Origin: Macrostomum lignano | Lineage: Eukaryota | Direction of reading: 5' to 3' | Assembly (NCBI GenBank): GCA_002269645.1 | Contig: NIVC01000168.1 | Location: forward strand, 599,297 to 663,296 | Length of the DNA: 64,000 nt | Part shown: positions 29,965-59,967 of the stretch, one piece after another | How positions within the stretch are numbered: position 1 is the first letter of the stretch | How the letters are laid out: every line of letters starts with the position of its first letter | Position numbers and translations under genes: made by a program | Notes under the pieces: generated by a model | Seen by the model: only the letters and a program-made list of their open reading frames with translations | Databases searched by the model: none | Told to the model about the DNA's origin: nothing

Positions 29965-32900
29965 TTTATTCATAGTGAATATATATTAATAATTAATTTA
30001 CAATACCTTTTAACTCTATTTCAATGGCATACTAGTTTTATGAATTATGTGGCTATACTTTTTATACTAAACTGAAGTTGACAAATTTAACCAGGCTTAC
30101 CTAGAAACATAGTAAACTTGATAACACAGTTCACGATTAAAAAAGTTGACAAATTTACCTGGATCCAAATGCACTAGATCATATAAAAACAAAAATAAAT
30201 ATTTTTTATTTTGAAATTTTATGTAGTTACTCATACTAATTGATTTTTAGCTTAAAAATTTTGCAATATTAAACTGTATGTTTTAAAATAAAATAAAAAC
30301 TTTTTTAATTCTTTACACTTTACTATTTTTACTTTTAAATTAAAATTATGTTCAGTTAAAATTGTATTACAGATAAGTGACGAAAGTAAAAATATATGTC
30401 AATGTTACCAGTATGTATGAAAGGTTTGTAAGCCATGATTTTTTGTATACTAGAGTATATTCCAAGCCAAGTATAGCATAGCAAATGTACACCAGAGAAA
30501 TCTGTTATGTAGGCCACCTTCTTGACTATGCCTTAGCTATACTATACAAGAAAGTTTGAACATTCCTAAATATAAAATTAGTGATATCTTGATACCCAAG
30601 TCTAACATTGCCAAAACCTTAGTAACTGTATATATTTATCTAACAATATATGTTTTCTACAATTTAAGACCATTCAAGTCAGTTTAGAAGCAGTATAAGC
30701 TGAGATATAGAGCTTTAAAAAATAAAAACATGCACACTTTTTACTACTTCCTAACATATGATCCTAACTTTAAAGCTAGAATACTATATGAAAACATGTT
30801 TTTATGCAAATATATTCATATTAGGGGGCCCGAAGCTGAATAAATAATCTAAAAATGATACCACACTCAACAATTAAAATTATAATTAAAAAGTTATTCA
30901 TATAAAAATGAAAAATTCTTTTACTTTTTCAAAAAGGTCATTTCTGTAGGCCTAATATATTTTGGCCATTAAAAATGTGACAATTTTTTTACAATATGAT
31001 AATAGGCCTAACTTTTTTATTACTGAACCAAATAACTAAAGTGAGCATTTTTTATGTTCATAATAACATAGCTTATCTATTTTGTTATGAACAAAACAGA
31101 ATTTAAAATTTTCAAAATCTTACTGAAGTCTCTACTATTGAAGTTCAAAAATTTAACTTAATTATCTAAACAATCTTGGAGTCAAGTCTTAAATTGAATA
31201 AATTCAGTAACATGAATTGTCTCTAATGGAGAAGTTATAGTTACAACTTAAGGGACATATATAATGATCTTCTCTATACTCTAGGAGCTAAAAACAGAAA
31301 CAGCCAATTGAGAGAGATTGAAAACTAGTATGTGGTCATTTTGTTTGCTGCCCTTCTGTCTACCAGCAGACAAAATGACTTTTTAATAATAAGCAGCAAA
31401 ATAGGTTTTATAAATGGCTAGAAGTAATTTATAGTTTATTTGTAATAATAAGAACTTGCAAATAATTTTTCAGATTAAGAATTATATATAATTGTTGTAT
31501 TTTTTATTTTGTTTAAATTGCAATGTTTTTAAGAAATACATTTCTTCTTATATAAGCTTTAAATCTACATAAGAGTGAGATTTATAATTTGCACCATGCA
31601 TGTAGGCCTAACCAAAAGTCAAGTCTTTCAAGCATTTTTTTAATCATATTTTTATAGACAACTGAACTGCATTATTTGCCATCATGTTGTTAGACCTAAT
31701 ATTTAGAAATTGCTCATTTAAGTCATTTTATCACTAAGAAATGGTCTTGATATCTTAATCACTGTTATCTTATAATCACTATCTCAAACTAATGACAACT
31801 GACATATTTACACTTATAAAACTTTACTAGGCCTATTTGTGGCAGATGAAATGACTATATTATATTCTTGCAGACAAAAGGGTGGCAGACAAACTGGCAA
31901 CAGACAAAACAACTGTCAACCTAAAAGCTTCATAGGCCAATTAGAGCTGTGGACACTTTAAACATGCACCTAAGGCTAAGGCCTAGCCCTAGCCTTATAC
32001 ATGTGTAATACACATTAACACATATGATACAATATTAAAAATGAAATAAAAACTAATAGGTCTAGGCCTAATAAGCATATAATCAATAAATTATATGCTT
32101 ACAGTATAGGAAATTGAAGAATATAAGCCTATATAGACCTAGTTTTAACTATAGGGCCTAGGCCTAGACTAAGCAGTAGGCACACAAACAAAACTAAAAC
32201 TTACACTCCAGAAAGTATCATAAATATTGTTGCAAAAAATGTAGCCCATTGTAGCAAGGTTAGAAGAAAGTAGTCCATAGCTGAATACTGAAACTGATGT
32301 CTGATTTAGACTAGGCCTAGTCCAACGAAGATGGACAAACTAGAAATTATTCAAATGACCAAATTATTGGATAAACTAGAAAAACTAGTCCTGATAAACT
32401 AGTTAGCGTAGTTATCTACGCTAAAAAATCAAGCTACGGCACGCCGCACACCTGATCCTTAACTATATATAATAACTATATACAACTGTCGAAAAATATA
32501 TAGTATGCTAAAATTTATAACTGAAATGGTTAAATAAAGTAGTATGAATTAGATATGCTCCCAACTAAAATTTAGAAAATCCACGGTATTCATCTTTTAA
32601 AATTGAGCACTGGTGAAGCCGAAATTAAAAAGACCGCCAAAACGTGACAAAACATTACGAGGATTTACGATTAGGTATAGTAGACGAAGCCTTAAAACTT
32701 CATGAGTTCGTCAACCACATGTTTTCTGCATTAGCTCTGACTTCGTTCGTTACTGGCCTTCAGTGAGATGAAGCTTTTGGACATTCAACAGGTGACTATG
32801 GACAAACGCTGTTGCAGGGAACATCAAATTTAGTTCCAAAATGGCAGTGATGTATTAGAGCGGTGCTTTCGCTGTCGGATCCCTCGATTGGACCGGCAAT

Positions 32901-34252
32901 TAGTCTCTCTATCTCTCTATGTCTCACTTGACCACAAGGGGTTACTACGGGATAAATAGGGATCTTATTTCAACTCAAGGCTCCAGCTGGAAGTGCGATT
33001 GTACCACGCAGATGCACCAGATGTACGTACACTGTACGAGAGCTGCGCTTTCGCTTTTAGGTCACTAAGTTGAACTTAAGGCACCTAAAATTCACTTAAA
33101 AATTACTGTTGCAATCTGCGTGTAGGTAGTATTTTCTGTCTAGTGCACAGAAGTAGCTATATCATGCTTTTGCGCAAATTTTACTTGGTTTTATATATAG
33201 TTATTTTTATCTCAAGTTTTTTTTGCGTGGCAGTGAATTCAATGCATTTTGTACTTTTTTAAAGAAAGACCATTTCTGTGTAAAAGTTCGGTTTAATTCA
33301 AAGTTTCATAAACTAAACAACTTGTCCAATAAAACTTATATGTATTGCGTGTATAGTAGGAGGCAGCAGTGATCGAGTTAGAAAAACCTTATAGAGTATA
33401 TATTTAAGAGAAAGAAAATCTACAGTGTAGCGCTTTGGGAAAACTCGACCTGATCTGGTAAAATATTGCTACCTACATGTATCTCGACTGTCCAGAAGGC
33501 ATGGCGACTCGGTTCTTTGTTTGAGATGGTTTGCAACAAAAAAATAACCTGTATTCTCAAAGTTCAGGTGCCTTCGTTGCTCCATATTTTGCGCAGCAGA
33601 AGAAATTGCCAGGGGTTGCCAGAAATTGTCGTAAGTGACTAATTGTGGTATTCCTACTGTTAATAAAAACCTGCACCCTGTGACGCACGTTATATATATT
33701 TGTCTTCATCTCTTCACTCCTGAATTTTGATATTTAGTACAGGAAAGCAATTAAAAACTTTGAATCATCTGTCACGATGTTGATGTTGGCGTAGCGGCTA
33801 ACTATGGCTAGGACCCTTAAAAGGGCCGTTTTGACAAGCGTTGCAGTAAGTCGTAGTTCCAAAATAAGTTGAAGTCAACTCTTGCAAAGCGGATTGTGTA
33901 GCGGAGCACTTGGTAATAAAGGCAGGAAACTGCCGTAGTTGTTTTATTGTTAAAATCAATATTAGGCTTGGTTATTACTGTCAATACACAAACTATAGCT
34001 TCTGGGCACTGGCGGCTGCAACAATGGTTTTGAATATAATTGGAGGTGAAGTCAAGTGACAGACGAGTGATGCGATGGCGACGTAACGTAATGAGCAATG
34101 GCAATGAGCACAGTGAAGGCGGTGAGACACAGTAGGCAGGATTGGCGTCAGCCGTGGCGTGAGATAAGGAGGCTCGAGGCAGCCAGACAGAGAACAAGGC
34201 AGACAAGCCTAAGGAGAGAGAGAGAGAGCAAAACCAGGAATGAAGGTGGAGA

Positions 34253-34631
34253 CCATAGATAAAGTATACCATAGATTCCACCCCTGCCCAGAATGTACAC
34301 ACGCTCGTGTCCAAACTTTGACCACCATAAAACTCACCGTGCTCTCATTGGCTGGCGCGAAAGCCTTCCTTTCAACACCTTCGATTTCATTCCCTCACCC
34401 CTTCCACACAAGAAAGCTTTATAACTTTAATGCGCGGAACGAAAGGATGTCTTACCAGTTTCAACAGTTAAAGCGGAGATAATAGAAAAGCGGAGTTGGG
34501 GGAATGTACACACGTGGACTCAATGTGCATAGCGTGGCCCAGCCAATAGGAGCGCAGTGAATAAAGTGATGGTCACAATTTAGACACTCCGCGGGGGTAG
34601 GGGTGGAATCTATGGTATACTTTATCTATGG
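34253..34631. mobile_element. 379-bp MITE with 33-bp TIRs
   Basis: TIR CCATAGATAAAGTATACCATAGATTCCACCCCT and its reverse complement; flanking TGGAGA duplication (34247-34252, 34632-34637). Confidence 0.9.
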
Positions 34632-34979
34632 TGGAGACCCCCAGCTCGCCAGGCGAGGGTTAATAAAGGAGCGCAGAGGGGGGGTAGCACGAAGCACGAG
34701 CGGTTCTCATTGGCTGGCTAAAGAACTTAAAATTATCGATCGTGCCAGTTTTCTACGGTCGCATGAAAGGATAGCAAAATGCGCAGTGAGTTAGCGATAA
34801 GTACAAATTCATTGGGCACTACTACAAGTAAACGTTAAAATAAACTATTGGAGAAATTAAAATGAGAAATAGCAAGGGAAACTATAGTCCAACGGCCCTC
34901 TCGGGACCACTTAAACTAGCAACGTCACACATCGGTCTGATCATCTTATCTTTCATAAGCAGCTTCTATTAAGGATCTA

Positions 34980-37186
34980 CCCAGTGAAAAAAATGATATG
35001 GATTCCATGTAGATTTTTCATATGAAATCCATATGTGCATTTGTCTCCGTCCATCCATGTGGAATCAAGATATGGATTCCACATCGAAGATCCACATGGA
35101 AGTAATTATGTATTTCACATAGAATCCACATTGTCATTGATTAGCAGCCATTATACTGGTTGCCATAATAAATTGTTGCATCTTAAATCTCAAAATATTA
35201 CCAGATCTCAAAATTTCATACGAACCCCAGATCTCAATACCATATAAAAAAACTGAAACACAGAAAAACACTAAAGCCAAAAAGTATTTCTGCACAAAAA
35301 TATATTCAAAAAGGATGCCTCAATAAGTAAGGTGTATTTATGTACAGTAGTAAGTCACTGGCACACAAAGAATAAACACACTGATGTAGATATTGATACC
35401 TTTAGAGTTGCACATTATATGATATAATATATAATTTGAAACTGACATTATCAATAGCATTAATTAACAATATTATTTTATAATGCACCAGAATTAGAAC
35501 ACTCAGAAACAAGCTGCTGCCAATTGCCAGAATGCTGCTTCTTCAGGTCAGGTGAGAAACCTTAGAAAAGAAATGAGTTAAATTACAGAATTTTATTAAG
35601 TATCTGTGGATAACAGATAAATGTACATTTTGATGACAGAAAAAAATCAGTTTGTAACTAAAACTTATCACTGCTTCACAAAAGGTAGCATTCTGGATAT
35701 TAAATTCAAATTCCAAGTAGCTTTGCTTGCTTCTTGAAAGGCAAGACCAAGGTGATACTCAAGTTTCAGGATAAGCCACGTGATGTTAGGCTGAAATGAA
35801 ACAAAAAAATAGTTCTTGCCAATTGATAAATTCTTAAAGATTGATAAATTATATTAGTATACTTTTAAGGATGAATACTTAATAAAGACTATTTCAAAAG
35901 TAACAAGGCCTAAGTCAATAAATAGAAATATCAATAAAATAATGAGTACAGACATTATTATTATATATGTTTATAGATTTAATTTTTTTATTTTAAAATT
36001 GGTTCTAGACCATATAGTTTTTAGGCAAAACAATGCAAGTTCCATTTATTTGCTAGTATGATAAAACATTAGGCCTAAGTCTAAATAGGCATTATGCCCC
36101 ATGGCTATTAAATTCTAGACTTGGCCTAGCCCTACATCTGATCAAATTTACAATAATCATTATTTATTCATAATAACAACCTTAGCTGCTAGGCTAGTTA
36201 TGCCAAAAGCAAGTTGCAAGTATAATTGCAAAGAATTTGTTTATTATATCTAAAAACATTGTTTTTAAAAATGCAACAAGTCCAAAAGATGCTAACAGGC
36301 TTTCTTGCAGAAAATCATAATTTAATAGATTTAACTGAATAGCTTGATTAACTACTCAATTCACAAAGTCAAGCTACCTAACCTTAATTAAAATAGAAAG
36401 ACATAACTTGATAGATATGGCTTAAAATAGGCCTAATAACCATACATATAAACAGATAGGTAGGACTAAGAGGAAATTATGAGCTTCTGTAGGCCTATTG
36501 AAGTTAAAAATGAGTATCTAAACTATGGGCATGGTCATGGGATTCCTAGAAATTGGATAAATAATTTTATCATGAATTTTACTAAAAGTAGCCTATCTAT
36601 GAAAAAATACCGATTTATCTAATTTTGAATCCCATGGAGGCCATGGCCTTATAAGTGTTGCCTATAGGTTAGGCCTACTAAAATTTATAAGGTGCTTAAA
36701 TAGCCATAAACAAGGCAATTTATCTTTCAAGGCCTTGAACCAAGACATTGACGAATAAAAATAAAATAAATTTAATTTTAAAAAGCACGAAACATTTTTT
36801 ACTGTCCACTTCTATTTTGTCTGTTTTAACAAACAGCGTCTAATTTTTCCAATATAATTCAGCTTAAAGTTATTAAGTTTTACTTAAAAGCACATAAATA
36901 TAATAATTAAATTAATTAATTTTATAAAAACATCTGAATGTAGTATATCTCAGTTTTTTATCGAAGTGGATTCCATGTTGAATCAATATACGCGTATTTC
37001 TGATGAATTCCTTGTAAAATCCACATCTACATTAGGATAGTAAAAATAGAAAATTAATGCATAAAAAATACTTTGCATACCATTATGTAATCTTTAATTC
37101 ATTAATTTGCAAAAATAAAAGAAACGTTTAAATTCCACATGGCCACGTGGAACCCACGTGGAATCCATGAATCATTTTTCACTGGG
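34980..37186. mobile_element. 2.2-kb non-autonomous CACTA/EnSpm-like DNA transposon
   Basis: TIR CCCAGTGAAAAA(A)ATGAT-ATGGATTCCA; TA on both flanks; multiple subterminal GATTCCAC/GTGGAATC repeats at both ends; AT-rich interior. Superfamily assignment is inference. Confidence 0.8.
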
Positions 37187-38118
37187 TAAGGATTAAAAGC
37201 ACTCCGCCCCAGCTCAACATTCAGACAGCCGATGAAGAAGCTATTTGTGCAGAGCTACTGCAGCTGCATTATAAATGCATAGATTAGCTACTGACGCGAG
37301 ATCTGAGTCAAAGTAAATAATGCAATGCTGCATGCCCAGCTTTGATTCTTGGCACTGTCTTTAATGCTTTTATTGTGATTTTTTTAGCAAAAGCAGTGGC
37401 TCAACACTGCAACGATCGGGAATGGAAATGATCACACTCAGCTTTGGATTTTTTGCATCTTCTGGCGTCTTTGAAGTGCCACCGGGCTTGAAGCCAGTTC
37501 AGTTCTAGAAGCCTCAGAAAAAGATTACTAATTAATCTGGAGCCATTCGCTTCCATCCATTTGCATCCATTCTATCTCAAGCAGTACGGCTTCTCTAGTC
37601 AAGAGTTTGAGTTCAAACAGCTCGTCTTACTCTTAGGCAATCATGTTATTAAGTGGGACCAATTTGATCACAGGGCCTTAGCATATTTTTTGTCGCTCGT
37701 ACGACTTGATGGCTTGATTGGTGGCGGTATAAATGAGTCTTTTGCTGAAGGTAAGAGGATAAACTACTTGTATTAGATTATGTACTTTTAAAGAAACTAA
37801 CTAATACGCTCGCAGATACACTGTTGAGCTGGGAGGGATGTCATGGGAAAAGCATGACTGCAATCAATGCTAAGCTGCCCAGACTGCACTGCTGAGTTGG
37901 AAAAATTGACAGACATGTTAGAAAGATTAACGATTGCCGGAAACAACAGACTGCAGAAGTTTCATTGTGTTTACCTTTACTCAAGTCATGGCTTTTATAT
38001 TTTAGCAAAAGCAGACAAACACTGTGGGACCAAACAAGACAATGATATAGGTAGAATTAAATATGTTCACAGTTGAAAAGGACCAAATTAGAAAACTCTG
38101 GGATAATTTAAGCGGCTG

Positions 38119-39254: not shown

Positions 39255-42200
39255 TCACCTATCACCGTTTCCTTTGATACAACGTGAGTTCAGCGGCATC
39301 GATTCTTTCACGTCTTCGTCGGCTTCGTCGGGGTGTCGCTGTGCATCGAACTGATCAGCGGTCTGCATCGTCTGCAGAGCCATGGAGCTGCCATCGTTGC
39401 GGCCCCGCCGGGAGCCACCAGCGGAGCAGCACAGCAGCTTCTGCAGCCGGTTGCCCAGCGGCGTGACTCTGAAGGCGCTCCGGAATTCGCTGTTGATGGC
39501 GAAGTAGGCCAGTGCGGAGGCCGCCATGCCGCTCTTGGCCATCAGCAGCGCTAGGGTGGACAGCACCCGGTACAGTCGGCCTTCGAGATGCAGCAGACCG
39601 GCGAGGCTGCTGACTGCCATAGCAGAATAGGGCGTCCAGCACAGTAAGAAGGCGCCTGGAGTGATGTAGGGATTGGCGAATACTGGAGTTGGTGCAGTGC
39701 GACTTCTTGAGGTGCTGGATGAATCCTTGTACATATGCATTAAAGTTTCCGAGATCGGAAATGGCCAACCCCCAACGGAGAGCCCAGTGGTCAAGACTTA
39801 GCATTGCTCATTTTCTTAAACTTAAGGTGCAGTCAGTCAGCGCTCTCGGCTAACTTTGAAATCTACTCCAACGCCCGTCGCCGAGAGGCTTTCGAGCTTT
39901 TCCAATTGCTTTTCCAGGCGCAATAAGTGCAGGGATCTGCAGTTTTTGCACCTGCTGAACTTTGCCCTGACTCTGATTGACTTCTATTCGGACCAGACTC
40001 TCTCATCTTCGACCGCACACGCCTCCTGAGCGGCGGAAACCTTACGTTCTGAGGAGCGGCCCGTCGGCCGTCCAGGGGCCGGCGGAATGGGTGCTGGCCC
40101 CTTCCAGCTGCGTCTTTTGGCATGGACTCTCACCTGGGCCGTCTCTCAGAGCGCCCTGCAGAAGGCCAAACAGAGCCCCAGCTTAGAGTGTCTGCATGAG
40201 TGTCTCTTCCAATAGCGTCTTCCGGAGCGCATCGCAGAAGCCTCAGAGTCACCCCCTCAGCCTCAGCTATCCCTCTCGTGACACCGCCCTAAAATATACT
40301 CGTAGAAAAGTAAAACCCGATTTCGCCCAGACAGCGTACTAAAATTAGCAAACATTTTTTCTCTACAGCTGGCTTCACGGCTCTCACGAAGAAACTCGCA
40401 GCGCGATCGAAGCAAGCACGCCACGGAAACCATAAGACGGCGTTGCTTTATAACTCGCCTGCACTTGAAAACACGTTATAAATGCAAACCTTTTTTTGTA
40501 CGCCTTATTTTGCCAGCCATATTGATCGATTGAAGCTCGAAAGCTATACAAGCGTTCCGTTGTTCATGCCACGACAGAGCTTGGAATTCGACCCATGAGA
40601 GATGGTGTGGAAGAGAGAACGATAATTTAAGGAACACCACTGCACTAGGCTATAGACGGGGTTGTGAGGCATAAATTCCGCCAAGTTTAGCATCAACTAA
40701 AGCGAAAGGTTTTACTTTAGGCAAAAACCAGGACGTGGCGTCCCATGCGGCCACACAATCCATGGGGATCGATATGTCTACCCAACCGATGCAATGCTCG
40801 GCATCGACAACTTAAGAATCTGAATGCTACAAACAATCTCTTAGACTGTTTTAGCTCTCCTAGAGAGCCAAAATGTAATTTTAGAATCAAGTCTACTTCG
40901 TGCACAGACTCTGTATGCAATTCTTAACTTATCAAGAAGCAACTTGGTTTTAATAGGGGATACAACATCTTTTAAGACCATCATCGTTTGCAGCTTTGGT
41001 GCAATCCTGAAGCGAGACTAAGGCATATGGCGCATAGGCCTCTCGAAGCCATGATTTCAAATTCAAATTGTTCAATAGAATTGAGCACAAAGATACGTCG
41101 CAAACATAACGTCTTTCTCTTCTTTCACAACAATAGCGGCGTCTTCCAGTCTTTAAAAAGTTCCAGCCCATCCTCCTGGCAGCACTATCCTGCCCAGTTT
41201 GAGGAGCATTGCTGCCCCCCCCCAGTCAAATACAAGTTGCAGCAAGTCAAGCAAAACGTAGCCACCTGCAGTAATTTCACTTATAATAATTACAGGCATT
41301 AACTGCCGTGGATGCGCGCTCAGTGTCTTGCCAATGTCATCGACACGGCGCTTTGCGTTTTTATAAGTTCGCTCGGGCAGAGCGCGAAGTAGGATTCAAG
41401 AGCGCTCATCTGTTGTTCATCTGCCTGGAATACCAAGCATTGTAATAACTGCTCCAAGCCTAGTCTCCGTGTCCGTATCCGACATTACACGAGCTAGCTC
41501 GTATTTTACGGCATCGTTTTAGCTGACTGTTTCAGTCAGGTATGTCCGCTATGAAGAAACAATGGAAAAGGCAGGCGCTACATTAGATGGCGAACTAACG
41601 GTATTTTAGGTGCTGTTGGGTGCTGTTGGTGTTGTTGGGTGCTGTTGGGTGCTGTTGGTGTTGTTGGGTGCTGTTGGTGTTGTTGGGTGCTGTTGGGTGT
41701 TGTTGGGTGCTGTTGGGAGCTGTTGGTGTTGTTGGGTGCTGTTGGGTGCTGTTGGTGTTGTTGGGTGCTGTTGGGTGCTGTTGGGTGCTGTTGGTGTTGT
41801 TGGGTGCTGTTGGTGTTGTTGGGTGCTGTTGGGTGTTGTTGGGTGCTGTTGGGTGCTGTTGGTGTTGTTGGGTGCTGTTGGGTGCTGTTGGTGTTGTTGG
41901 GTGCTGTTGAGTGCTGTTGGGTGCTGTTGGGTGCTGTTGGGTGCTGTTGGGTGCTGTTGGGTGCTGTTGGGTGCTGTTGGTTCTGTTGAGTGATGTGGTG
42001 CTTTTGGGTGCTGTTATGTGCTGTTGGGTGCTGTTGGGTGTTGTTGGGTGCTGTTGGTGTTGTTGGGTGCTGTTGTTGGGTGTTGTTGGGTGCTGTTGGG
42101 TGCTGTTGGGTGCTGTTGGGTGCTGTTGGTGTTGTTGGTTTTGTTGGGTGCTGTTGGGTGCTGTTGGTGTTGTTGGGTGCTGTTGGGTGCTGTTGGGGCT

Positions 42201-45200
42201 GTTGGGTGCTGTTGGGGCTGTTGGGTGCTGTTGGGTGCTGTTGGGTGCTGTTGGGTGCTGTTGGGGCTGTTGGGTGCTGTTGGTTCTGTTGAGTGATGTG
42301 GTGCTTTTGGGTGCTGTTATGTGCTGTTGGGTGCTGTTATGTGCTTTTGGGTGCTGTTATGTGCTGTTGGGTGCTGTTATGTGCTGTTGGGTGCTGTTAT
42401 GTGCTGTTGGGTGCTGTTATGTGCTGTTGGGTGCTGTTATGTGCTGTTGGGTGCTGTTATGTGCTGTTGGGTGCTGTTATGTGCTTCTAGGGTGCTTTTG
42501 GATGCTAATTGATTTAATAAGCCAAGTTTACATAGCATTGAAACGAGTATATTCGCCCAATAGATGTACTAGAAGGACTTTTAAAGCACGATTGAGATAC
42601 CAAGTAAAGAAGCTCCTGTCTGCTGGTTGGTGCTTTATTATTTATATGTAAGAAGTCCCCGTTAATTGTTCTCTGTAAATTAGGCTGGAAATTGTCTGTG
42701 AAACTCTGAAGAGCTGCCTGAATTTCTCCCTGAATTTCTCACTAACCAGAATTCCCTTTGTTCTACTGCTCTTAGCGTTGGGTTTGCCTACCTTAAACTG
42801 AAAGAGAAAGCTGCTCAGAGCTCTCCATACTTCCAGGAGTATATCCTCAGGGCAGCTCACCTGATTTCCCACTTTGAATGCAAGATATTTTGCTTGATAA
42901 CATGACTTGTTTCTTGCGCAAACGAATCCAAAATTATGGGTGTCTTTCTCTTAATTTTTAATAAATTATTTTTATATTCTAATTTCAAAATTTTATCCAA
43001 CTAATTTATATCCACAATTTTTGTTATTCACAGTTAATGCAGGCTTATTGAGTTACTATTTTTTATTGCTTATTTTTTAAATTTCCTACCCGCCAGGCGA
43101 AATGTCCTACCCGCCAGGCGAAATGTCCTACCCGCCAGGTGAAATTTCCTACCCGCCAGGCGAAATGTCCTACCCGCCAGGCGAAATGTCCTACCCGCCA
43201 GGCAAAATGTCCTACCCGCCAGGCGAAATGTCCTACCCGCCAGGTGAAATGTCCTACCCGCCAGGCGAAATGTCCTACCCGCCAGGTGAAATGTCCTACC
43301 CGCCAGGCGAAATGTCCTACCCGCCAGGCGAAATGTCCTACCCGCCAGGCGAAATGTCCTACCCGCCAGGCGAAATGTCCTACCCGCCAGGTGAAATGTC
43401 CTTCCCGCCAGGCGAAATGTCCTACCCGCCAGGTGAAATGTCCTTCCCGCCAGGCGAAATGTCCTACCCGCCAGGTGAAATGTCCTACCCGCCAGGCGAA
43501 ATGTCCTACCCGCCAGGTGAAATGTCCTTCCCGCCAGGCGAAATGTCCTACCCGCCAGGTGAAATGTCCTACCCGCCAGGCGAAATGTCCTACCCGCCAG
43601 GTGAAATGTCCTTCCCGCCAGGCGAAATGTCCTACCCGCCAGGTGAAATGTCCTACCCGCCAGGCGAAATGTCCTACCCGCCAGGTGAAATGTCCTACCC
43701 GCCAGGCGAAATGTCCTACCCGCCAGGTGAAATTCCTACCCGCCAGGCGAAATGTCCTACCCGCCAGGCGAAATGTCCTACCCGCCAGGCAAAATGTCCT
43801 ACCCGCCAGGCGAAATGTCCTACCCGCCAGGTGAAATGTCCTACCCGCCAGGCGAAATGTCCTACCCGCCAGGTGAAATGTCCTACCCGCCAGGCGAAAT
43901 GTCCTACCCGCCAAAGCGCATTTGTTCTTGGGCAAATTATCTTTGGTAATTCTGCATAATGAGCTCCAGTTTTCATTACGTCAAGCAACAATATTAGGGC
44001 AGTTCGAGTAAATTTTTAAATCCGATCGCGTCTAAAAACCGACTTTGCTGAAATTTTTAGAAGAATCCATTAACCCTGTCTTTCCTTTTGTTTCCTTTCA
44101 TGACGAAACTGAAATGTGTGGGCGATGGCAGCCACCCACAGTCAGCTGCACGCAAACTAGGTAAAGTCATCAAGCCGTCATTTATAATTTTTTGAGTCTA
44201 ACATCTCTCTGTCACGGTCGTCAAGGAAGTTGAGATGAAATTGAAATTTCTGTAGCGATCGCTGTGCAGCAAGGGAGCCGCTGGACAGTCGGCACGCAGC
44301 CATCCGGCTCCTGTAATTCTACACTTGATGATGCTCATGCTCCTGAAATTGTGCTTTAATTACAGAGCCATTTGCTTGCTTTTTTGTTTGAAGGCAGTTC
44401 TGCGTTAATAGCTACTCGAATCGCGTCAGCAGTGTTTGGCCTTTCAGTCTTCTTGACTGCGACAAGAATAAATCATTTTTTTGTGAGACATCCTAGCAAA
44501 GAGAAAGTAACTGTGGATACGTAGTTGTAAACTGTGATTTCTAAAATAGAGCGAGAGTGAGAGTGAGAGTGAGAGTGAGGGTGAGAGTAAGAGTGAGAGT
44601 GAGAATGAGAGTGAAAGTGAGGGTGAGAGTGAAAGTTAAAGTGAGAGTGGGAGTGAGAGTGGGAGTGGGAGTGGGAGTGAGAGTGAGAGTGGGAGTGAAA
44701 GTGGGAGTGGGAGTGAGAGTGAGTGTGGGCAAGGGTGACCCTAACACAGCCGGTCGGGAGGCCAGAGCCAGAGGCTGGCAGGCATCACAGCTCACCGATG
44801 ATGGCGAGCACGTGAATGGCGAACTTCCTGTCCCTCCTGGCCTGGCTGGAGCTCGCGGCCAGCAGCCCGGAGCTGCGGTGCCGTCGGATCTGCAATGAAT
44901 TTCCGGATGGTCATCTGTTGACTTCGGCTTGCTGACAGTTTTAAAGTACATCTCTGACAGTCAGCCCAGTGCAGCCAAAGCGGATTAGCATTTAACGCAG
45001 AATCCATGCTTGTAGCAGCTTTGGCTTGTATCTAGTCCGGAAATTAATTGTTTCACCCCACGGAAAGTGACTCGTGCTTTGCCAGTGCAAAGCATTTACA
45101 AAGGCAATTTTCGTATTCACTAAGTCACTGTTTCAAATTATTGCAAAACTCCGAATAACAAATTTTTGTATGGTGAATCTGGAATCCTAACTTCAACTGA

Positions 45201-48200
45201 CCATCGTTCTCATCCACTCAACGGAATTAAATTTTTTAATCAGGTCCATCCTGACACAGCATCCATCATCTAGATCTCACCTGACACAGCTTCCTGCATC
45301 TCGATCTCATCTGACACAGCATCCGGCATCTCGATCTCACGATCTCACCTCACACAGCATCCGGCATCTCGATCTCACGATCTCATCTGAGACAGCATCC
45401 GGCATCTAAATCTCACCTGACACAGCATCCGGCATCTCGATCTCACCTGACACTGCATCCTGCATTCAGATCTCTGACACAGCACCCTGCATCTCGATCT
45501 CACCTGACACTGCATCCTGCATCCAGATCTCATTTGACACAGCATCCTGCATCTCGATCTCATCTGACACTGCATACGTCATCCAGATCTCACCTGACAC
45601 AGCATCCTGCATCTCGATCTCATCTGACACAGCATCCGACATCTTGATCTCACCTGACACAGCATCCTGCATCCAGATCTCACCTGACACAGCATCCTGC
45701 ATCTCGATTTCACCTGACACAGCATCCGGCATCCAGATCTCACCTGACACAGCATCCTGCATCTCGATCTCATCTGACACAGCATCCGACATCTTGATCT
45801 CACCTGATACAGCATCCTGCATCCAGATCTCATCTGACACAGCATCCGGCATCTCGATCTCACCTGACACAGCTGCTGGTCTTTTTCTGAGGCAATCTTA
45901 TCTCTTTTTAAAGAAACTCAGCCTAACTAATGCGCTGTCTATCCCAGATTTGCCATCTTGAGTTGAGAACTAACAGATTTAAAAGCGATAAAAATCAATT
46001 TTCAGAACTTATTTGAAACGTCCCTAAAATGCAACGCAGACCAGGCACAGCTAAAAGCTGACGAGGTTCGAGGTTCCCATGATGAATCCTTAGCACTATT
46101 AAAGCAAGTAATTCTACCAGGCAGCTAGAATAGGCGAATAGATAAGCCAGAGGCTTATCTGTCACGGACTGTTCCTATATTAATGCCATCAATAATATAT
46201 TTATTCACTCGGCGCGTCACCGGCAAAAGCCCTACTCAAATTCCGCCTAGTAGAAAAGGAGCTCTGCTAGCTGTGAATGCTCCTGGGTCGGGCATCAGCT
46301 GGTGACTGAAGTTATTTAATCCTAAGAGAATTAGACTTCGGAGTAAGACCATTGACTCTCTACTAAGGTATTACAATAAATCCTTGGAAATACTGACTTT
46401 GCCTTGCATGCTTTCAGCTCAAATGCTCAGAGCCAATCTTTTACTAATGAGTAAGTACACTGTCTAAGTATCTTAATCCCATTATTATGCAATCCTGGAC
46501 TAGCTATAGGGATCACTAGCATCAAAGCGTCAAGACCTCAAGAACGACTAGAGGCTGTCAATCATACTAACTCTCACATTAAACCCACAACTGACATCCT
46601 CCACTGACATCCTCCACTGACATCCTCCACTGACATCCTCCACTGAAATCCTCCACTGACATCCTCCACTGACATCCTCCACAGACATCCTCTACAGAAA
46701 TCCTCTACAAACATCCTCTACAGACATCCTCCACTGACATCCTCTACAGACATCCGCAATTGCCATCCTCCACTGATATACTCCACTTGTTGTGTTCTAA
46801 TTAACACAGAGAGTTTCTTTGATTGAAGCTTTCTCGGCGAGACACAAATCTCGCTCACAATATATTTATAGAGATGAAACTCCTACTTGCACGTTGCATT
46901 GCCAAATCGATACGCAATCACCTACTCATTCTAGTCTGAGTACAGTATACGCCCACGCATTCAATAAGGTCAATAGTTAATTGTCAGTGGTCAGTTCATT
47001 GCGCAAGCATTGTCAATCACAACACCACTGACATCCTCCACTGACATCCTCCACTGACATCCTCCACTGACATCCTCCACTGACATCCTCCACTGACATC
47101 CTCCACGGACATCCTCCACTGACATCCTCACTGACATCCTCTACAGACATCCGCAATTGCCATCCTCCACTGATATACTCCACTGACATCCTCCGCTGAC
47201 ATCCTCCACTGACATCCGCAATTGCCATCCTCCACTGATATACTCCACTGACATCCTCCGCTGACATCCTCCACTGACATCCGCAATTGCCATCCTCCAC
47301 TGATATACTCCACTGACATCCTCCACTGACATCCTCCACTGACATCCTCCACTGACATCCTCCACTGCCATCCTCCACAGACATCCTCTACAGACATCCG
47401 CAATTGCCATCCTCCACTGATATACTCCACTGACATCCTCCACTGACATCCTCCACTGACATCCTCCACTGACATCCTCCACTGACATCCTCCACTGACA
47501 TCCTCCACTGATATCCTCCACTAACATTCATAACTGACATTCCCCACTGACGTCCTCCAATGATATCCTCCATTTCCCACTGACATTCTCCAATGACATC
47601 CTCCATTCTCCACTGACATCCTCCATTCCCCATTGACATCCTCCAATGACATCCTCCATTCCCCACTGACATCCTCCACTGACATCCTCCATTCCCCAAT
47701 GGCATCCTCCAATGAAATTCTCCACCCTCCACCCACACCGGACAAAGCACAGCAGAACCTGTAAGCTTCACTACCGCCTTCAAGCACCTGCCCAGCCACG
47801 TACGTGCATGAAAATCGCCGCATAGGAGGCCGCGATGACCGCCAGAGGCAGCAGAAACTCCCCAACCAGCAGGCTGACCAAGTAGGCCCGGTCGCCCGGC
47901 CGGCCGCTCTCCCAGTCCAGGTCGCAGGCGGCCACGTGGCTGACCCGACGGACCCCGGCGACGCCGAACATCGGTGGCAAACTCCAGGCGGCGCTGATGG
48001 TCGCGCAGGCTACGACTAGGGCGAAGGCGTGCCAGTTGTCGAACGGCCGGTTCCGGGTGACCATTCGGCACCGCAGAGCTGACAGCCCGGCCAGCAGGTT
48101 GATGTTAAACAGGCCGATGGCACAGGTGCTGAACACGTACCTGGAGATCGAAACTTGTTGATGGCATCTGCAGCCGCTTCTTTATCCCCCCCAGCTTTGA

Positions 48201-49289
48201 TTTAAGCAAGATTAAGAACAAGGACAAGGAGATTAATTTGATTGCGTTCACGATTGAATGAGGCGCGATTAGTTATAAAGCAAAGCTGCTTAAAGTCGGG
48301 ATTAAGTCGAAGCTGCCTTTGATCGCGGGGGTTGCAAGAAAAAATGGATCAGGTCGCTTGCGAGTCTCTGTCTTAGTGCGACCCCACGTGTCCTTTGTTA
48401 CAAAGAAACTGCTAGCTTAACAAGAGCGCTTTAACAGTCTGGAAACCACTTACAGGTGGATTACATGGTTGGTTGAAGAATAGTATCATATGTTGCATTT
48501 TCCTAGCACAATTAGACTCGATGTTTTATGTAGTTCTGCTTTTACGGACTAGCTGCTGTTGTGAATTATAGAACATGACTGACGCACATCAAAAACATAC
48601 ACAGTCCTTGACTTGTGCTCACTGGCTGTGTCGAGCTCCATTGCTTCTGCTCTCTGCGAGTACTTAGCTTTGATAGCGGTGAATTTAAACTGAAGGATGC
48701 CATCATGAGAATCTCATGAGAGCGGGGGGTCAAGAGAGTAATTCAGTACTTAATGCATCTGACTGTCGCTTATTTGGGCCAAACTTGAACTTATTCATCT
48801 GTGTGGCCAGCCCCCAAGGCACAAATTGTGTACATTCCCCACGATGAGAAAGTAAAAAGTGCTGTTGTTGGCTGTGGGTCGACTATATCGATCGCTTGCT
48901 GATTTGTGGCAGTGCCCAAGGAAACCCTCAAACTAACTACCTCGTAATTGTCTGACAGGGAAAGGTCGTGGTTTGCCAGCTGCAGCTCACCAGTAGCACC
49001 AACCGACGTGGAAGGCCCATTCGCCAGCCAGCCAGGCGGAGGTGAGATTCAGCGACGCGGCCACCAGCACGCAGATGCAGTTGCCTAGGAAACCGGCGCA
49101 CAGTACCAGCATGGATGGATTGCGCAGCGACTGCGAGGCCAAGATGTTGTACGCCGACAGAGCGTTGGAGGCGAAGCTTACGACGAACACGACGGTAAAC
49201 CAGATGGCGTTGGCGCAGTGACCCCAGCTGATGTTGGTTGAAAAGTCAGTGTAGTTACTAGGAGGAGTTGCTCCGTTTGCCGAACTCAT
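39255..49289 (-). CDS. Divergent opsin (peropsin/RGR/retinochrome-like, group 4), about 376 aa, 4 exons
   Basis: Exons 49289-48991, 48140-47804, 44889-44796 and 39655-39255 in consistent phases (1131 nt; an in-frame upstream ATG at 49451 is also possible). Motifs WCYWYVF (C110), CDLDW (C187), FLLCWTPYS (TM6) and LMAKS (K296 equivalent). Confidence 0.88.
41610..42500. repeat. Low-complexity (TGCTGTTGGG)n-type 9/10-bp repeat grading into a TGCTGTTATG variant, opsin intron 3
   Basis: Direct. Confidence 0.95.
43082..43912. repeat. 21-bp minisatellite (GAAATGTCCTACCCGCCAGGC)n, about 39 copies, opsin intron 3
   Basis: Direct periodicity. Confidence 0.97.
44552..44726. repeat. (GTGAGA/GTGGGA)n hexamer repeat next to opsin exon 3
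   Basis: Direct. Confidence 0.93.
45250..45870. repeat. 30-bp minisatellite (CACCTGACACAGCATCCTGCATCTCGATCT)n, opsin intron 2
   Basis: Direct periodicity. Confidence 0.94.
46595..47720. repeat. Two arrays of a 13-bp repeat (CTGACATCCTCCA)n at 46595-46790 and 47025-47720, opsin intron 2
   Basis: Direct periodicity, separated by about 240 bp of unique sequence. Confidence 0.93.
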
Positions 49290-50481: not shown

Positions 50482-53400
50482 TGATGTAGAGACTATTGAT
50501 TGACTGAGATGTCTATGGTGTAAGCTTTTATGCTATCGTTCAGTGCGCGGCATCGCTTTTATTTCAATAAAATATACATATGCAACAAAATATAAAACAT
50601 GGCGTCCCATAGCAGCGATTAACTGCCAAACGCTTTCGTGACAGCTAGCTCGTACTTTGCGACCATGATGTCGCCAACTAAAGCCCCACAGTAGTCACCA
50701 ACCAAGGCACCACCATCGGAACCAACAAAAGCTCCTCCACCGGAGAGGCTAACGAGCCAAGATGAGTCAGCGCGGAGAATTTCACTCCCGGGTCTACAGA
50801 TCCCTCGCTTAGACCTATCCACAGACACGCTGGATGAGTTCGACGCATGGCGTGCAACATTTGAGGCCTACTTCGAGGCTATTAGAACAGCTGATCTCCG
50901 CCATAATGGCGTTGTACTGTGCTACGAGAGCAGCTGTGAAGACGCCGGACGGCCTGTCGGACTCCTTCGAGACATCCTCCGGGGTGCACCAGGGGGACAC
51001 TCTAGCGCCGTTCCTGTTCGTCCTGGTGCTTGACTGGGCGCTATGAACTGCTCTTCCTACCGACGAAGACGGCTTCCTACTGCGGCGACGCGTGGGTCGA
51101 CGTCAACCGGAGAAACGGCTCAGCATGCTTGGCTACGCCGATGACCTCGCCCTGCTGTCCTCGACCGTAGAGGGTGCCCAGCGTCAGCTGGACAAGCTGG
51201 TTAGCGCTGCAGCGAGCGTCGGCCTGGTGGTCAACATGAAGAAGACCGTTGTGCTCTGCGTGCCGGCGACATCGAGGCCGCAATTTTCTGCCAAGGCGCT
51301 GGCGGGCAGGTAACGGAGCTTCCGCGCTGTCAGCAGTTCGTCTACCTCAGCGGTCTGGTACCTGACGTCCGCGAAGATCTGCGGCGTCGCTGCGGGCTTG
51401 CCTGGGCTGCCTTTCACTCTGTGAGGGCGGTCCTGCAGTCCGAGGACCTACCTGACCGCCAGAGGGCGGCGCTGTTCCAGGCGGTGGTCGAGACCGTTCT
51501 GTTGTACAACGCCTAGACCTGGACGCTGACGGATTCGATCGAACAGCAAGTCAACGCGGCACACGCTGGCCTGCTGCGCGCCGCCTTTAAGATCAGCGAC
51601 GAGCGGCTCACTAACGCGGCACTCTATCGCCGCGCCGGCTTGGCCCATCCAAGTGAACTGCTGCGACTTCGGCGACTCCAGCTGGCAGGCCACATCATCC
51701 GCGCCGAGTCCTACTGCCCGCAGCCGGTGCAGGAGGTGCTGCTGCTAACGTTGCAGGCACCCTACCGGCGCGGCCAGGCCCGAACTCGGCGTTTCGTCGA
51801 CTGCCTGCTGGCCGACGCTGGTGCCCCGGACTCTGCCGGCGGTGCGGCCTTTGTTCGCGCCCAGGCTCTGAAGCGTGCCCTGTGACGCTGCTTTTCTCCA
51901 CCTGACAGCGTACTTTGTTGTTGTTGTTGTTGTTTTTGTTGTTGTTCGAGGCTATGGACATTAACAACCTCGCAAGTGACAGCCGGGCTATTGCAGGTCA
52001 GAAAAAAGCCAGTCGCAGAGCTTGCATGCTCAACGCATTCTCAGCAGCCACGTTCTGCAAATACCAGAACCTTGCCCTGTCCGAAAAAGAGCTGAAAGAC
52101 CCCGAAAAAGTCATCAAAGCGCTTCGAGAGCATTTGACGGGCCAAGTCAATATAATAGTAGAAAGAAACAGCTTCTGGAGACGACAGCAAAAGGACGGAG
52201 AAACATTCAACGAATATGTTCTTGAGCTACGAAATTTAATGAGAACATGCCAATTCTGTGAACACTCAGACGACCTTCTGAGAGATAAAATTGTACTCGG
52301 AGTTAACAACTCAGAAACAGTGAAAAAGCTACTGGCTGAGCCGACCCTCACTCTCGCAGGAGCTCTACAAGTATGCAAAGCCGAGGAGGCGAGGATATTG
52401 GATCCTAAGCTTGAAATGGTACGCAAAGCCACAGCTACAGATCCGCACATGCAAGACTTGATCAGTGTGATAATGGCCGGATTTCCTCAAAATAAACAGG
52501 ATTTACTCGAGCACCTAAGACCATACTGGCAAGTACGTGAAAAGCTTTCAGTGGAAAATGGTGTTATACTATATGGATGCAGATGCGTGATACCGAAATC
52601 ACTGCGCCGAGAAATGCTCTCACTGCTGCACTCCAGTCATCAAGGTACCGCCAAGACAAAGCAAAGAGCTCGCATGATCCTTTTCTGGCCGAATATGAAT
52701 AAAGAAATCGAGGACACCGTCAACAATTGTTAATCATGTCAGAAAGTTTTGCCATCACAGATGCGAGAACCAATTAAGATTAGAGATCTGCCAACGTGAT
52801 GTTTTAAAGAAGTCCATGGAGATATTTCTGCGAGTATGGTGGAAAAAAGTATCCCGTGGTCGTGGATGGTTACTCAGGCTGGCTTAGTGTCTGTAACTTC
52901 AACAACCATGCACCAACGCACAAATTGATAAACGCTGGCAGGGAACTGTTTAGCCAAACATCGGTACCCGAAAAATTTTGGTGTGACTCAGGACCACAAT
53001 TCAAAACCGAAGCATTCCTAAACTTTCTAAAACGATGGGGAGTTGAGGCCTGTTTCTCCTCTCCGCACTATCATCAGAGTAACGGCAAGGCGGAAGCAGC
53101 AGTAAAAACAGCCAAGAAGATCATACGTGGATCCTGGGACACAAGAACTGGTGACATAGACAAGGACGAGTTGGTCGAGGGGATATTGCAATATCGGAAC
53201 ACGCCTATGTACGACGGGCGAGTCCCCGACATTCTAGTCTTTGGTCATCCAGCACGGGACTCGCTGCCTGCTCACCGCAGATATTTTACTCCCGAATGGC
53301 ACAAGACTGCAGCCGAGCTGGAAGCCAAAGCAGCGGAAGTGCATGAACAAGTTGTTAACAGCTACCGAAGTCATCGTGCAGAACCCGGCGAATAAGCGTT

Positions 53401-58172: not shown

Positions 58173-59967
58173 ATGTCGCAGCAGCAGGACGTCAAGAAGG
58201 ACCTGTGCCAGCAGCTCATGACGCTGTACGAGATGCGCCTCCGCACCTTCGTCAAGTGGCCGTTCTCAGCGCCCAGCCGCTGCACCGCCGAGCGGATGGC
58301 TCGGGCCGGCTTTTACCGGATAGCTACGCCGGAGTGTCCGGATGCCGTGCGCTGTTTCTATTGCGAGAAGGTTGGCCGAATCTTCAACGTTAAACTGCCC
58401 GCTGCGCCTGCTGCCGGGTTCTGGGGGGGGGGGAAGGTCATTCTTACCGTCTTTATTATTGGTCTATTCTTCATTTTGTTCTTCATTTTCAACCTAGTCA
58501 GTTAGCTTGATTATCTCTCAGATTCTCAGTTGCTGGGCCAGCCTCCCAGATCCTCAGTTGCTGGGCCACCAGCCTCCCAGATCCTCAGTTGGTGGGCCAC
58601 CAGCCTCCCAGATCCTCAATTGCTGGGCCAGCCTCCCAGATCCTCAGTTGCTGGGCCAGCCTCCCAGATCTTCAGTTGCTGGGCCAACCTCCCAGAGTGT
58701 CAGTTGCTGGGCCAGCCTCCCAGATCTTCAGTTGCTGGGCCAACATCCCAGAGTGTCAGTTGCTGGGCCAGCCTCCCAAGTGCCAGTTGCTGGGCCAGCC
58801 TCCCAAGTGTCAGTTGCTTGGCCAGCCTCCCAGATCTTCAGTCGCTGGGCCAGCCTCCCAAGTGCCAGTTGCTGGGCCAGCCTCCCAAGTGTCAGTTGCT
58901 TGGCCAGCCTCCCAGATCTTCAGTCGCTGGGCCAGCCTCCCAAGTGCCAGTTGCTGGGCCAGCCTCCCAAGTGTCAGTTGCTGGGCCAGCCTCCCAGATC
59001 CTCAGTTGCTGGGCCAGCCTCCCAGATCCTCAGTTGCTGGGCCAGCCTCCCAGATCCTCAGTTGCTGGGCCAGCCTCCCAGATCTTCAGTTGCTGGGCTA
59101 ACCTCCCAGAGTGTCAGTTGCTGGGCCAGCCTCCCAGATCTTCAGTTGCTGGGCCAACCTCCCAGAGTGTCAGTTGCTGGGCCAGCCTCCCAAGTGCCAG
59201 TTGCTGGGCCAGCCTCCCAGATTGTCAGTTGCTGGGCCAGCCTCCCAAGTGTCAGTTGCTTGGCCAGCCTCCCAGATCTTCAGTCGCTGGGCCAGCCTCC
59301 CAAGTGCCAGTTGCTGGGCCAACCTCCCAGAGTGTCAGTTGCTGGGCCAGCCTCCCAAGTGTCAGTTGCTTGGCCAGCCTCCCAGATCTTCAGTCGCTGG
59401 GCCAGCCTCCCAAGTGCCAGTTGCTGGGCCAGCCTCCCAAGTGTCAGTTGCTTGGCCAGCCTCCCAGATCTTCAGTCGCTGGGCCAGCCTCCCAAGTGCC
59501 AGTTGCTGGGCCAGCCTCCCAAGTGTCAGTTGCTTGGCCAGCCTCCCAGATCTTCAGTTGCTGGGCCAGCCTCCCAAGTGCCAGTTGCTGGGCCAGCCTC
59601 CCAAGTGTCAGTTGCTTGGCCAGCCTCCCAGATCTTCAGTCGCTGGGCCAGCCTCCCAGATCCTCAGTTGCTGTTCCGTCGTCACCTATCCAAGGTTTCT
59701 CAACGACTCCCGCAGGAACTGGACGGCTGGGACGTCAACGACGACCCCGTGGGGGAGATGCGGCGTCACGCGCCCCACTGCCGCTACCAGGATCTGCCGA
59801 AGGCCTACGATGACATGTCCGTGGAGGAGGTGCTGAGCAGCGAGGCGGAGCGGCACATCCAGGCCTTGGAGCGGAGCCACGCGGCCTGGCAGGCCAGGGT
59901 CGACTCGGCCTCGCAGGAGCTGCTGCGGGAAATCGACCGCCAGATTGAACGGATTCAGGGGAAGTGA
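58173..59967 (+). CDS. BIRC5: Survivin-like single-BIR protein with C-terminal coiled coil, 149 aa, 2 exons
   Basis: Exons 58173-58370 and 59716-59967 (phase 0). RLRTFVKWPF...CTAERMARAGFY...CFYCEK|ELDGWDVNDDP...C, followed by a long amphipathic helix. Confidence 0.9.
58520..59675. repeat. 27/28-bp minisatellite (CAGTTGCTGGGCCAGCCTCCCAGATCCT and CAAGTGT variants) filling the survivin intron
   Basis: Direct periodicity. Confidence 0.96.

Follow-up and report, generated by a model that had tools for sequence, protein, structure and literature searches.

A divergent Macrostomum lignano opsin of probable xenopsin descent that lacks the proven counterion acids and carries aspartate at site 188

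The counterion of the retinal Schiff base has been proven at three positions in animal opsins, namely sites 94, 113 and 181 (bovine rhodopsin numbering, used throughout), to which chloride is added in the anthozoan-specific opsins II (ASO-II) of corals (PMC12401545). The ASO-II opsins, of which Acropora Antho2a is an example, are the only characterised pigment-forming animal opsins without an acid at any of 94, 113 and 181; they are restricted to cnidarians, and their counterion is chloride in the dark and Glu292 once the photoproduct has formed (PMC12401545). Here we describe a bilaterian gene in which these sites are likewise free of acids. It lies on the minus strand, at 39255-49289, of a 64,000-nucleotide stretch of Macrostomum lignano DNA (assembly GCA_002269645.1, contig NIVC01000168.1, positions 599,297 to 663,296 of the forward strand), the whole of which is referred to below as the window. 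Its product is an opsin that keeps the Schiff-base lysine, has an aspartate at site 188 and probably belongs to the xenopsin lineage.

Site 188 adjoins both the C11=C12 bond of retinal and Glu181 (PMC8871353). Among nine G188 mutants of bovine rhodopsin only G188D is red-shifted, forming a 509 nm pigment, and it accumulates meta I, an effect its authors put down to the introduced aspartate stabilising the protonated Schiff base (PMC8871353). In opsins with a cysteine at this site that residue drives thermal re-isomerisation: in Opn5L1 it reacts with retinal, and the coral opsin AtAntho2c cannot regenerate itself without it.

Xenopsins are known from protostomes, flatworms included. Nearly all of them share two introns of conserved position and phase that do not overlap those of the ciliary opsins (c-opsins), the first lying near a c-opsin intron and the second being clearly distinct, although the paper that reports this does not call the pair unique to xenopsins across the opsin groups (Vöcking et al., PMC5648526). 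Among 30 flatworm species screened by transcriptome, xenopsin-like opsins turned up in polyclads and triclads only and in no macrostomid (PMC6805122), a survey of platyhelminth genomes lists r-opsins and retinochromes only (PMC10097855), and the list of Vöcking et al. for M. lignano holds an r-opsin only (PMC5648526).

Counterion sites, retinal pocket and selection

The gene comprises four exons separated by GT-AG introns, and the joined exons give a 1131-nt reading frame of 376 codons that encodes a 376-residue class-A receptor. To judge from its sequence this receptor is a member of the animal opsin family with a Schiff-base lysine, and it is predicted to bind retinal. It matches Pfam 7tm_1 (E = 2.6e-14), its top sequence matches among solved structures are the S-cone opsin, the long- and medium-wave cone opsins and rhodopsin, and nearly all of the best 150 matches from a library of 1.84 billion representative proteins carry K296, the named ones being opsins. 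Hidden Markov models (HMMs) of three opsin clades score it at 151-164 bits versus 122 for one of non-opsin G-protein-coupled receptors (GPCRs). The AlphaFold2 model, built on a 91-sequence alignment (mean predicted local distance difference test, pLDDT, 85.6; predicted template modelling score, pTM, 0.82), has seven helices, helix 8 and a beta hairpin in the second extracellular loop (ECL2). The best Foldseek matches of this model in the PDB are squid rhodopsin, jumping-spider rhodopsin-1 and bovine rhodopsin, with a root-mean-square deviation of 2.0 Å over 284 columns for the spider protein. The equivalence of the LMAKS lysine to K296, proposed in the initial annotation together with the C110/C187 pair, also stands: HMMER aligns Lys284 with the K296 equivalents of human S-cone opsin (8y02), human rhodopsin (6cmo) and human long-wave cone opsin, it occupies the K296 column in a MAFFT alignment of the best 150 relatives with bovine rhodopsin as anchor, and both cysteines are present.

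The known counterion acids are missing. Sites 83 and 94 are Asn, 110 is Cys, 113 is Tyr (in CYWY), 122 is Leu and 134-136 read LRC; further along the protein come V181, C187, D188, D190, E211, W265, Y268, L292 and K296, then SALAY at 302-306 and NSE at 310-312. The assignments at 94, 113, 181 and 292 are those that had been made by hand, and they are independent of the alignment. By direct reading of the sequence, Asp and Glu are absent from transmembrane helix (TM) 2, from TM3 between C110 and R135, from TM7 up to helix 8 and from ECL2 between its PP motif and C187, and realignment therefore cannot restore a known counterion. The initial annotation had also envisaged that a different exon structure might return the ECL2 glutamate. 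This loop is coded wholly within exon 2, and a tblastn search of the window for an alternative opsin-like exon with such a glutamate found none, so that, together with the acid-free segments, neither route can put a Glu or Asp back. The loss stands out among relatives, since site 181 is Glu or Asp in 109 of the 115 relatives that bear Lys296, and Glu in all 13 sequences of the xenopsin clade; the missing acid is more than chance.

What remains in the pocket is Asp173, at site 188, which had been noted in the motif CDLDW and is indeed there, followed by a second Asp at 190. It is the sole acidic side chain at a pocket-lining position. In the model the ECL2 hairpin is formed by residues 163-166 and 171-174, with V166 (site 181) closing the first strand and C172-D173 (sites 187-188) lying in the second. 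The extracellular half has further acids in D190, in E192 (frequent among xenopsins), in E211, close to the ionone ring, and in ECL1 and ECL3, each with a single Glu. In rhodopsin D190 forms a salt bridge with R177; site 177 is Gly in the window gene and Arg in the second copy described below. An acid at 188 is also found elsewhere. Two unnamed vertebrate-type opsins (P0119 and P0097) combine Ser181 with Glu188, the first having Glu113 as well and the second being a fragment that does not cover site 113, and three proteins of an Asterias/echinoderm-type group (P0017, P0026 and P0098) have Asp188 with Glu181 and a hydrophobic residue at 134. Interplay between 181 and 188 may be recurrent across opsins.

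The pocket as a whole was compared at 46 pocket and near-pocket positions with the 115 relatives. The beta-ionone side is retained (G121, L122, W167, W191, Y203, F212, P215, F261, W265, Y268, A295 and K296). Near the Schiff base three ECL2 replacements, Y178V, E181V and S186A, turn polar residues into hydrophobic ones, site 178 being Tyr or Phe in 115 of 115 relatives, and on the same side there are also the changes G114V, A292L and S298G.

The gene is present twice in the assembly. An exact-sequence look-up of the GenBank protein PAA90994.1 led to a second locus, L001 (GCA_002269645.1, contig NIVC01000099.1, 466735-498142), which is collinear with about 32600-57700 of the window and holds all four exons, with splice sites unchanged and the frame unbroken. 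The exons are 97-100% identical between the copies, exon 3 being 100% identical, while introns and flanks are 84-94% identical. The coding differences number 14 synonymous and 11 non-synonymous, giving a ratio of non-synonymous to synonymous rates (dN/dS) of 0.26 overall (p = 0.001), 0.14 in the seven-helix core (p = 1.4e-4) and 0.75 in the C-terminal tail. The core is under purifying selection. The residues given above from N83 to NSE at 310-312, sites 94, 110, 113, 181, 187, 188, 292 and 296 among them, are unchanged in L001, and because the second copy keeps these residues and the core dN/dS is 0.14, it is unlikely, as far as the sequences tell, that the gene is a pseudogene. Decay of a duplicate drifting towards a pseudogene in a neopolyploid genome would fit the almost neutral tail and the fragmentary database models, yet reading frames and splice sites are intact in both copies and the core is constrained, and we regard it as extremely improbable. 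L001 is probably a homeologue; M. lignano is called neopolyploid in the title of a cited paper, and neopolyploidy would explain the second copy.

How, then, might such a protein work? Retinal would bind via Lys284, and the polar ECL2 residues around the ancestral Glu181 counterion would have been replaced together by hydrophobic ones, with an aspartate appearing at 188. Asp173, on the strand beside the one that usually carries Glu181, would most likely be the stabiliser of the protonated Schiff base, possibly with a contribution from Asp190 and Glu192 and from Arg179 and Arg180 close by, and the outcome would be a visible-light pigment with a relocated counterion. If the pigment does absorb visible light, Asp188 is the most plausible counterion, because of the closeness of this site to C11=C12 and to Glu181 and because of the behaviour of G188D rhodopsin. 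A functional, fast-evolving M. lignano opsin of xenopsin descent with Asp188 as its likely Schiff-base stabiliser is a reading to which we would give an even chance.

The same residues can be read differently. The hydrophobic V114, V181, A186 and L292 could leave the Schiff base unprotonated, making an ultraviolet (UV) pigment of about 360-380 nm without a counterion, in which Asp188 would matter, if at all, only for the protonated photoproduct. Sites 94, 113, 181 and 292 are all non-acidic, hydrophobic residues have taken over several positions around the Schiff base, and some of the counterion-less ASO-II coral opsins are UV-sensitive (PMC12401545). However, known UV opsins usually retain E113 or E181, Asp188 would sit near the polyene chain, and the Schiff base of G188D rhodopsin stays protonated; nor is Schiff-base protonation reliably predicted by any sequence rule. 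We consider the UV pigment rather unlikely.

His181 and Lys184 hold a chloride ion in long-wave cone opsins, and an anion could also be the counterion here, with chloride held by Arg179, Arg180 and His183 of ECL2 in the manner of the coral ASO-II opsins. The loop sequence VRRVSHV does place three basic residues around site 181, and a chloride counterion has been shown for Antho2a (PMC12401545). The gene is, however, unrelated to the ASO-II opsins, it has no Glu or Asp at 292, which those proteins use for the photoproduct, and one of the arginines probably pairs with Asp190 or Asp188; chloride is accordingly a very improbable counterion. The three spectral options of the initial annotation, a pigment that is D188-stabilised, UV-absorbing or anion-dependent, are still the right ones.

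Introns, descent and signalling motifs

One of the questions raised by so divergent a protein is where among the opsins it belongs, and here gene structure says more than residues do. Exons of relatives were mapped to their genomic loci and the introns projected onto a common alignment, for four xenopsin-clade genes (Owenia xenopsin3, Lingula, Pinctada and Pecten) and five non-xenopsin genes (amphioxus c-opsin, bovine rhodopsin, and genes of Asterias, Tubulanus and Glandiceps), r-opsin positions being taken from the literature only. The Macrostomum introns fall at 112/phase 2, 230/phase 0 and 259/phase 1. The second and third of these, which bound exon 3, have a counterpart of identical column and phase in each of the four xenopsin-clade genes, and the five others lack them. 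This is consistent with the intron pair that Vöcking et al. found in xenopsins (PMC5648526). Neither position depends on a gap, in that 230/0 lies exactly 15 residues past Pro5.50 and 259/1 lies in a Gly codon six residues ahead of Trp6.48. Amphioxus c-opsin and bovine rhodopsin have the three conserved c-opsin introns, 121/1, 233/0 and 313/0, and none of them is present in the Macrostomum gene; its 230/0 is three codons from 233/0, with no gap between that intron and Pro5.50. Since two of its three introns match xenopsin genes and are absent from the five non-xenopsin genes, we think it likely that the gene is a strongly divergent member of the xenopsin lineage. Among the clade HMMs the xenopsin model scores highest (163.6 bits), followed by chordate-type c-opsins (158.6), tetraopsins (151.1) and non-opsin GPCRs (121.7).

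The first intron has a counterpart of its own. It interrupts GWCY/WYVF at 112/2, a column and phase shared with intron 1 of a 'peropsin-like' gene of Glandiceps talaboti (L009; SGCK/WYAF), a gene that has none of the xenopsin introns; the shared position may be that of an old intron or of one gained in parallel. An affinity to the Asterias-type group, suggested by a shared C-D-(L/I)-D after C187 and a hydrophobic 134, was considered and rejected: the Asterias introns (246/0 and 318/0) differ, and the HMM score of that group is the lowest. Nor is an Exaiptasia ASO-II sequence (P0074) any closer than other opsins.

The initial annotation had raised the chromopsin group, and with it a photoisomerase. 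Pro292 is reported to be conserved in chromopsins (PMC9368030). The Macrostomum protein has Leu292, it lacks the intron 145/phase 1 shared by the peropsin-named genes of Tubulanus and Glandiceps (only these two were mapped), and both xenopsin introns are found in its place; because of Leu292 and the different introns the affinity is unsupported. The protein might still, like RGR or retinochrome, convert all-trans retinal to the 11-cis form on illumination without signalling. In keeping with this, D83, E134 and N302 are replaced and position 7.50 is Ala both in SAxxY and in the NAxxY of RGR, but an NAxxY GPCR can still signal (PMC9368030). With chromopsin descent, Pro292 and chromopsin introns all wanting, and with the signalling residues listed next, photoisomerase function looks quite unlikely.

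The loss of G-protein motifs that had been claimed is only partly borne out. LRC at the E/DRY site and SALAY at NPxxY are as described, and the replacements amount to E134L, D83N (2.50), N302S (7.49) and P303A (7.50), those at 2.50 and 7.49 being a joint change. 'Lost' is nevertheless an overstatement, because R135, Y223, Y306, the acidic residue at 247 (6.30, Asp) and CWxP (CWTPY) remain; P215, the helix-8 Phe-Arg and the CC palmitoylation pair are kept too, and a non-acidic 134 is seen in many undoubted opsins among the relatives. Signalling is probably atypical rather than abolished.

Several observations weigh against a xenopsin-derived pigment stabilised by Asp188. In the pocket, Val114 occurs in none of the 115 relatives, the site being Gly or Ala in almost every one, and Leu292 in only about 2% of them; the two residues crowd the Schiff-base region and could block retinal binding. 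Asp188 coexists with Glu181 in the Asterias-type group and so need not be the counterion, and a salt bridge across the strands to Arg179 may cancel its charge. As to descent, the NxQ tripeptide expected of xenopsins at 310-312, though it varies within one of their subgroups, is NSE, the xenopsin HMM leads by 5 bits, compared with 40-80 bits for true clade members in leave-one-out controls, and the protein does not group with xenopsins in distance trees. The tree that had been proposed as a check gives no stable placement: the best non-self matches, 25-30% identical, are scattered over amphioxus c-opsins, echinoderm 'pinopsin-like' proteins, TMT, pteropsin, nemertean and octopus peropsins and xenopsins, and in the neighbour-joining (NJ) tree the protein itself forms a long branch that falls between opsins and the non-opsin outgroup. 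Over 200 NJ bootstrap replicates at two gamma shapes, a c-opsin came out as sister in about 30%, against about 23% for a non-opsin, 17-23% for a xenopsin, 10-14% for a cnidarian opsin and 8-10% for a tetraopsin. An orthologue from another species was found neither in the 1.84 billion representatives nor in a 5.8-billion word index, of which the first homologue search gave no match and the second the gene's own cluster only. The proposal in its full form, namely that the counterion moved from Glu181 to Asp188 in an overlooked xenopsin-lineage photopigment of M. lignano, would on this evidence be doubtful.

The departures from opsin type also bear on whether light is sensed at all. An opsin-derived receptor that has given up photoreception for a chemo-, thermo- or mechanosensory role, or has become an orphan, with its lysine kept by descent or for another ligand, would account for a score of about 160 bits against the opsin HMMs where typical opsins reach 250-370, for changes at 114, 178 and 181 that are unique or nearly so and a rare one at 292, and for the non-opsin sister in about 23% of the NJ bootstraps. 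Against it, the lysine and the aromatic cage of the retinal pocket are kept in both copies under purifying selection, and such a receptor seems to us unlikely.

Gene model and surrounding DNA

The spliced opsin gene of the initial annotation is real and intact, although its structure needed one more exon than an earlier model allowed (Table 1). That model, with three exons (49289-48991, 48140-47804 and 39725-39255; 368 residues), is in frame, but the start of TM6 becomes proline-rich and non-helical. Exon 3 contains no long open reading frame (ORF); it was revealed by a database protein (P0001) that runs on past AIFMH and is supported by two more, P0151 and P0152, and the three-exon model was dropped because P0001 and P0151 showed the 94-nt exon. 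The Pfam, PDB, first homologue and exhaustive library searches were run with the three-exon model, the key residues lying outside the changed segment. P0151 is GenBank PAA90994.1 (251 residues, 'hypothetical protein BOX15_Mlig015728g1', Macrostomum lignano), whose exon 2-3-4 joins are identical to those of the present model and which starts only within exon 2, without exon 1; P0152 (UniRef, Macrostomum lignano) agrees with the window sequence throughout exons 2 and 3. An upstream ATG at 49451 would add 54 residues, and its frame is broken by indels in L001, for which reason 49289 is taken as the conserved start.

The public models PAA90994.1, UniRef A0A1I8H915 and A0A1I8J5A0 all begin at Met126, without TM1-3, and in two of the three translation continues beyond the donor site of exon 3 into intronic sequence (...IIGEL...). 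Both genomic copies of the region concerned (window 47804-49289, minus strand; L001 8363-10261) have an intact exon 1. The gene may have been missed earlier because its GenBank model is without TM1-3 and carries the label 'hypothetical protein'.

Table 1 Coordinates of the opsin gene and of other features in the window
Feature	Position	Strand	Description
Exon 1	48991..49289	-	Start codon (49289), N-terminal glycosylation motifs NYT and NIS, TM1, TM2 (N83, N94), start of TM3 with C110; ends in W112 codon (phase 2)
Intron 1	48141..48990	-	850 nt, phase 2, in codon aligned to bovine 112
Exon 2	47804..48140	-	TM3, TM4, ECL2, TM5 (E at 211); ends after H229, phase 0
Y113 codon	48139-48137	-	Exon 2
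LRC codons	48076-48068	-	Exon 2
V181 codon	47944-47942	-	Exon 2
C187 codon	47926-47924	-	Exon 2
D188 codon	47923-47921	-	Exon 2
D190 codon	47917-47915	-	Exon 2
Intron 2	44890..47803	-	2.9 kb, phase 0, before bovine 230; 13-mer and related minisatellites
Exon 3	44796..44889	-	94 nt; end of TM5, third intracellular loop, start of TM6; D at 247
Intron 3	39656..44795	-	5.1 kb, phase 1, in bovine 259 Gly codon; 6-, 10- and 21-mer arrays
Exon 4	39255..39655	-	TM6 (CWTPY), ECL3, TM7 (with L292), helix 8 (NSEFRSAF), CC palmitoylation pair, C-terminal tail
K296 codon	39536-39534	-	Exon 4
SALAY codons	39518-39504	-	Exon 4
Stop codon	39257-39255	-	Exon 4
Angiotensin-converting-enzyme-like peptidase exons	about 4700-7600	-	Pfam Peptidase_M2, E = 7e-123 for one exon
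Class-A GPCR, unrelated to opsin	8770-9765	-	331 residues, single ORF; 7tm_1 and Srw-like; no identical product in the gene collection
RNA-binding protein gene exons, PTB or hnRNP-L type	21390-23574	-	RRM_5, RRM_1
AT-rich block	30001-38000		G+C 27-38% versus about 48% elsewhere; directly downstream of opsin gene
Retrotransposon remnant	51915-53395	+	Integrase zinc-binding domain and rve core in two separate ORFs
BIR (inhibitor-of-apoptosis) domain exon	58173-58505	+	

The window is eukaryotic in character and rich in minisatellites. Introns 2 and 3 carry arrays at 41609-42506, 43079-43913, 44548-44727, 45250-45873, 46590-46787 and 47025-47724, with 92 copies of a 10-mer, 40 of a 21-mer, 30 of a 6-mer, 20 of a 30-mer and 53 of a 13-mer, and the array lengths differ between the window and L001. 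Because of these arrays both strands show long ORFs that are spurious; translated ORFs hint at similar arrays at about 10.9-13.2 kb, 14.4-15.0 kb and 58.5-60.6 kb, and a proline/glutamine-rich repeat ORF at 58507-59967 follows the BIR exon. The retrotransposon remnant lies 2.6 kb upstream of the opsin start, and its insertion is probably older than the duplication because the region is also covered by the L001 alignment.

Comparison with known systems

The xenopsin placement proposed here is new for M. lignano with respect to the earlier surveys (PMC6805122, PMC5648526, PMC10097855). If the counterion has indeed been relocated, animal opsins would have a fourth natural site for it, and the pigment could be the one missing from the putative ciliary photoreceptors of macrostomids, a group whose transcriptome surveys yielded no xenopsin. 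As a bilaterian opsin that is under purifying selection, lacks the proven counterions and has Asp188, the protein offers a natural test of a counterion shift along ECL2, and it could serve as a scaffold for opsin engineering. RNA interference and in situ hybridisation are routine in M. lignano, which is a laboratory model.

Of the systems compared, the xenopsins, of which the Maritigrella crozieri protein (QEQ50488.1) and Owenia fusiformis xenopsin3 (ASM47593.1) are examples, are closest in gene structure and in HMM score, both diagnostic introns matching, and the consensus residues L122, W191, E192, WTPY and helix-8 FRxAF are all present. The differences are nonetheless considerable: identity is about 23-25%, Glu181 has become Val, Tyr178 and Ser186 are lost, DRY reads LRC, NPxxY reads SALAY, NxQ reads NSE, D83 is Asn, and there is an extra intron at codon 112. 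The ASO-II opsins share the absence of an acid at 94, 113 and 181, but the Macrostomum protein has Leu292 and Asp188, xenopsin-type introns and a bilaterian host. RGR and retinochrome are alike in their derived NPxxY, with Ala at 7.50 in RGR; they keep Glu181 as counterion, and the Macrostomum gene has a different structure, no Pro292 and no phylogenetic affinity to them.

A 'pinopsin-like' c-type opsin of Branchiostoma belcheri (XP_019648011.1, P0023) likewise combines Tyr113 with Val181 and has a similar ECL2 (THVAAMTVCSLDW). It differs in grouping with c-opsins in the tree and in having Ser188, a retained D83, SRY and NTxxY, and the likeness is probably convergent. As it has no acid at 94, 188 or 292 either, it is a second bilaterian opsin without known counterions.

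With respect to site 188 itself, the nearest parallels are the Cys188 opsins Opn5L1 and AtAntho2c and G188D rhodopsin, which, like the Macrostomum protein, place a reactive or charged side chain beside the C11=C12 bond. All three of these keep Glu113 and/or Glu181 or Asp292, whereas the Asp188 of M. lignano would act alone.

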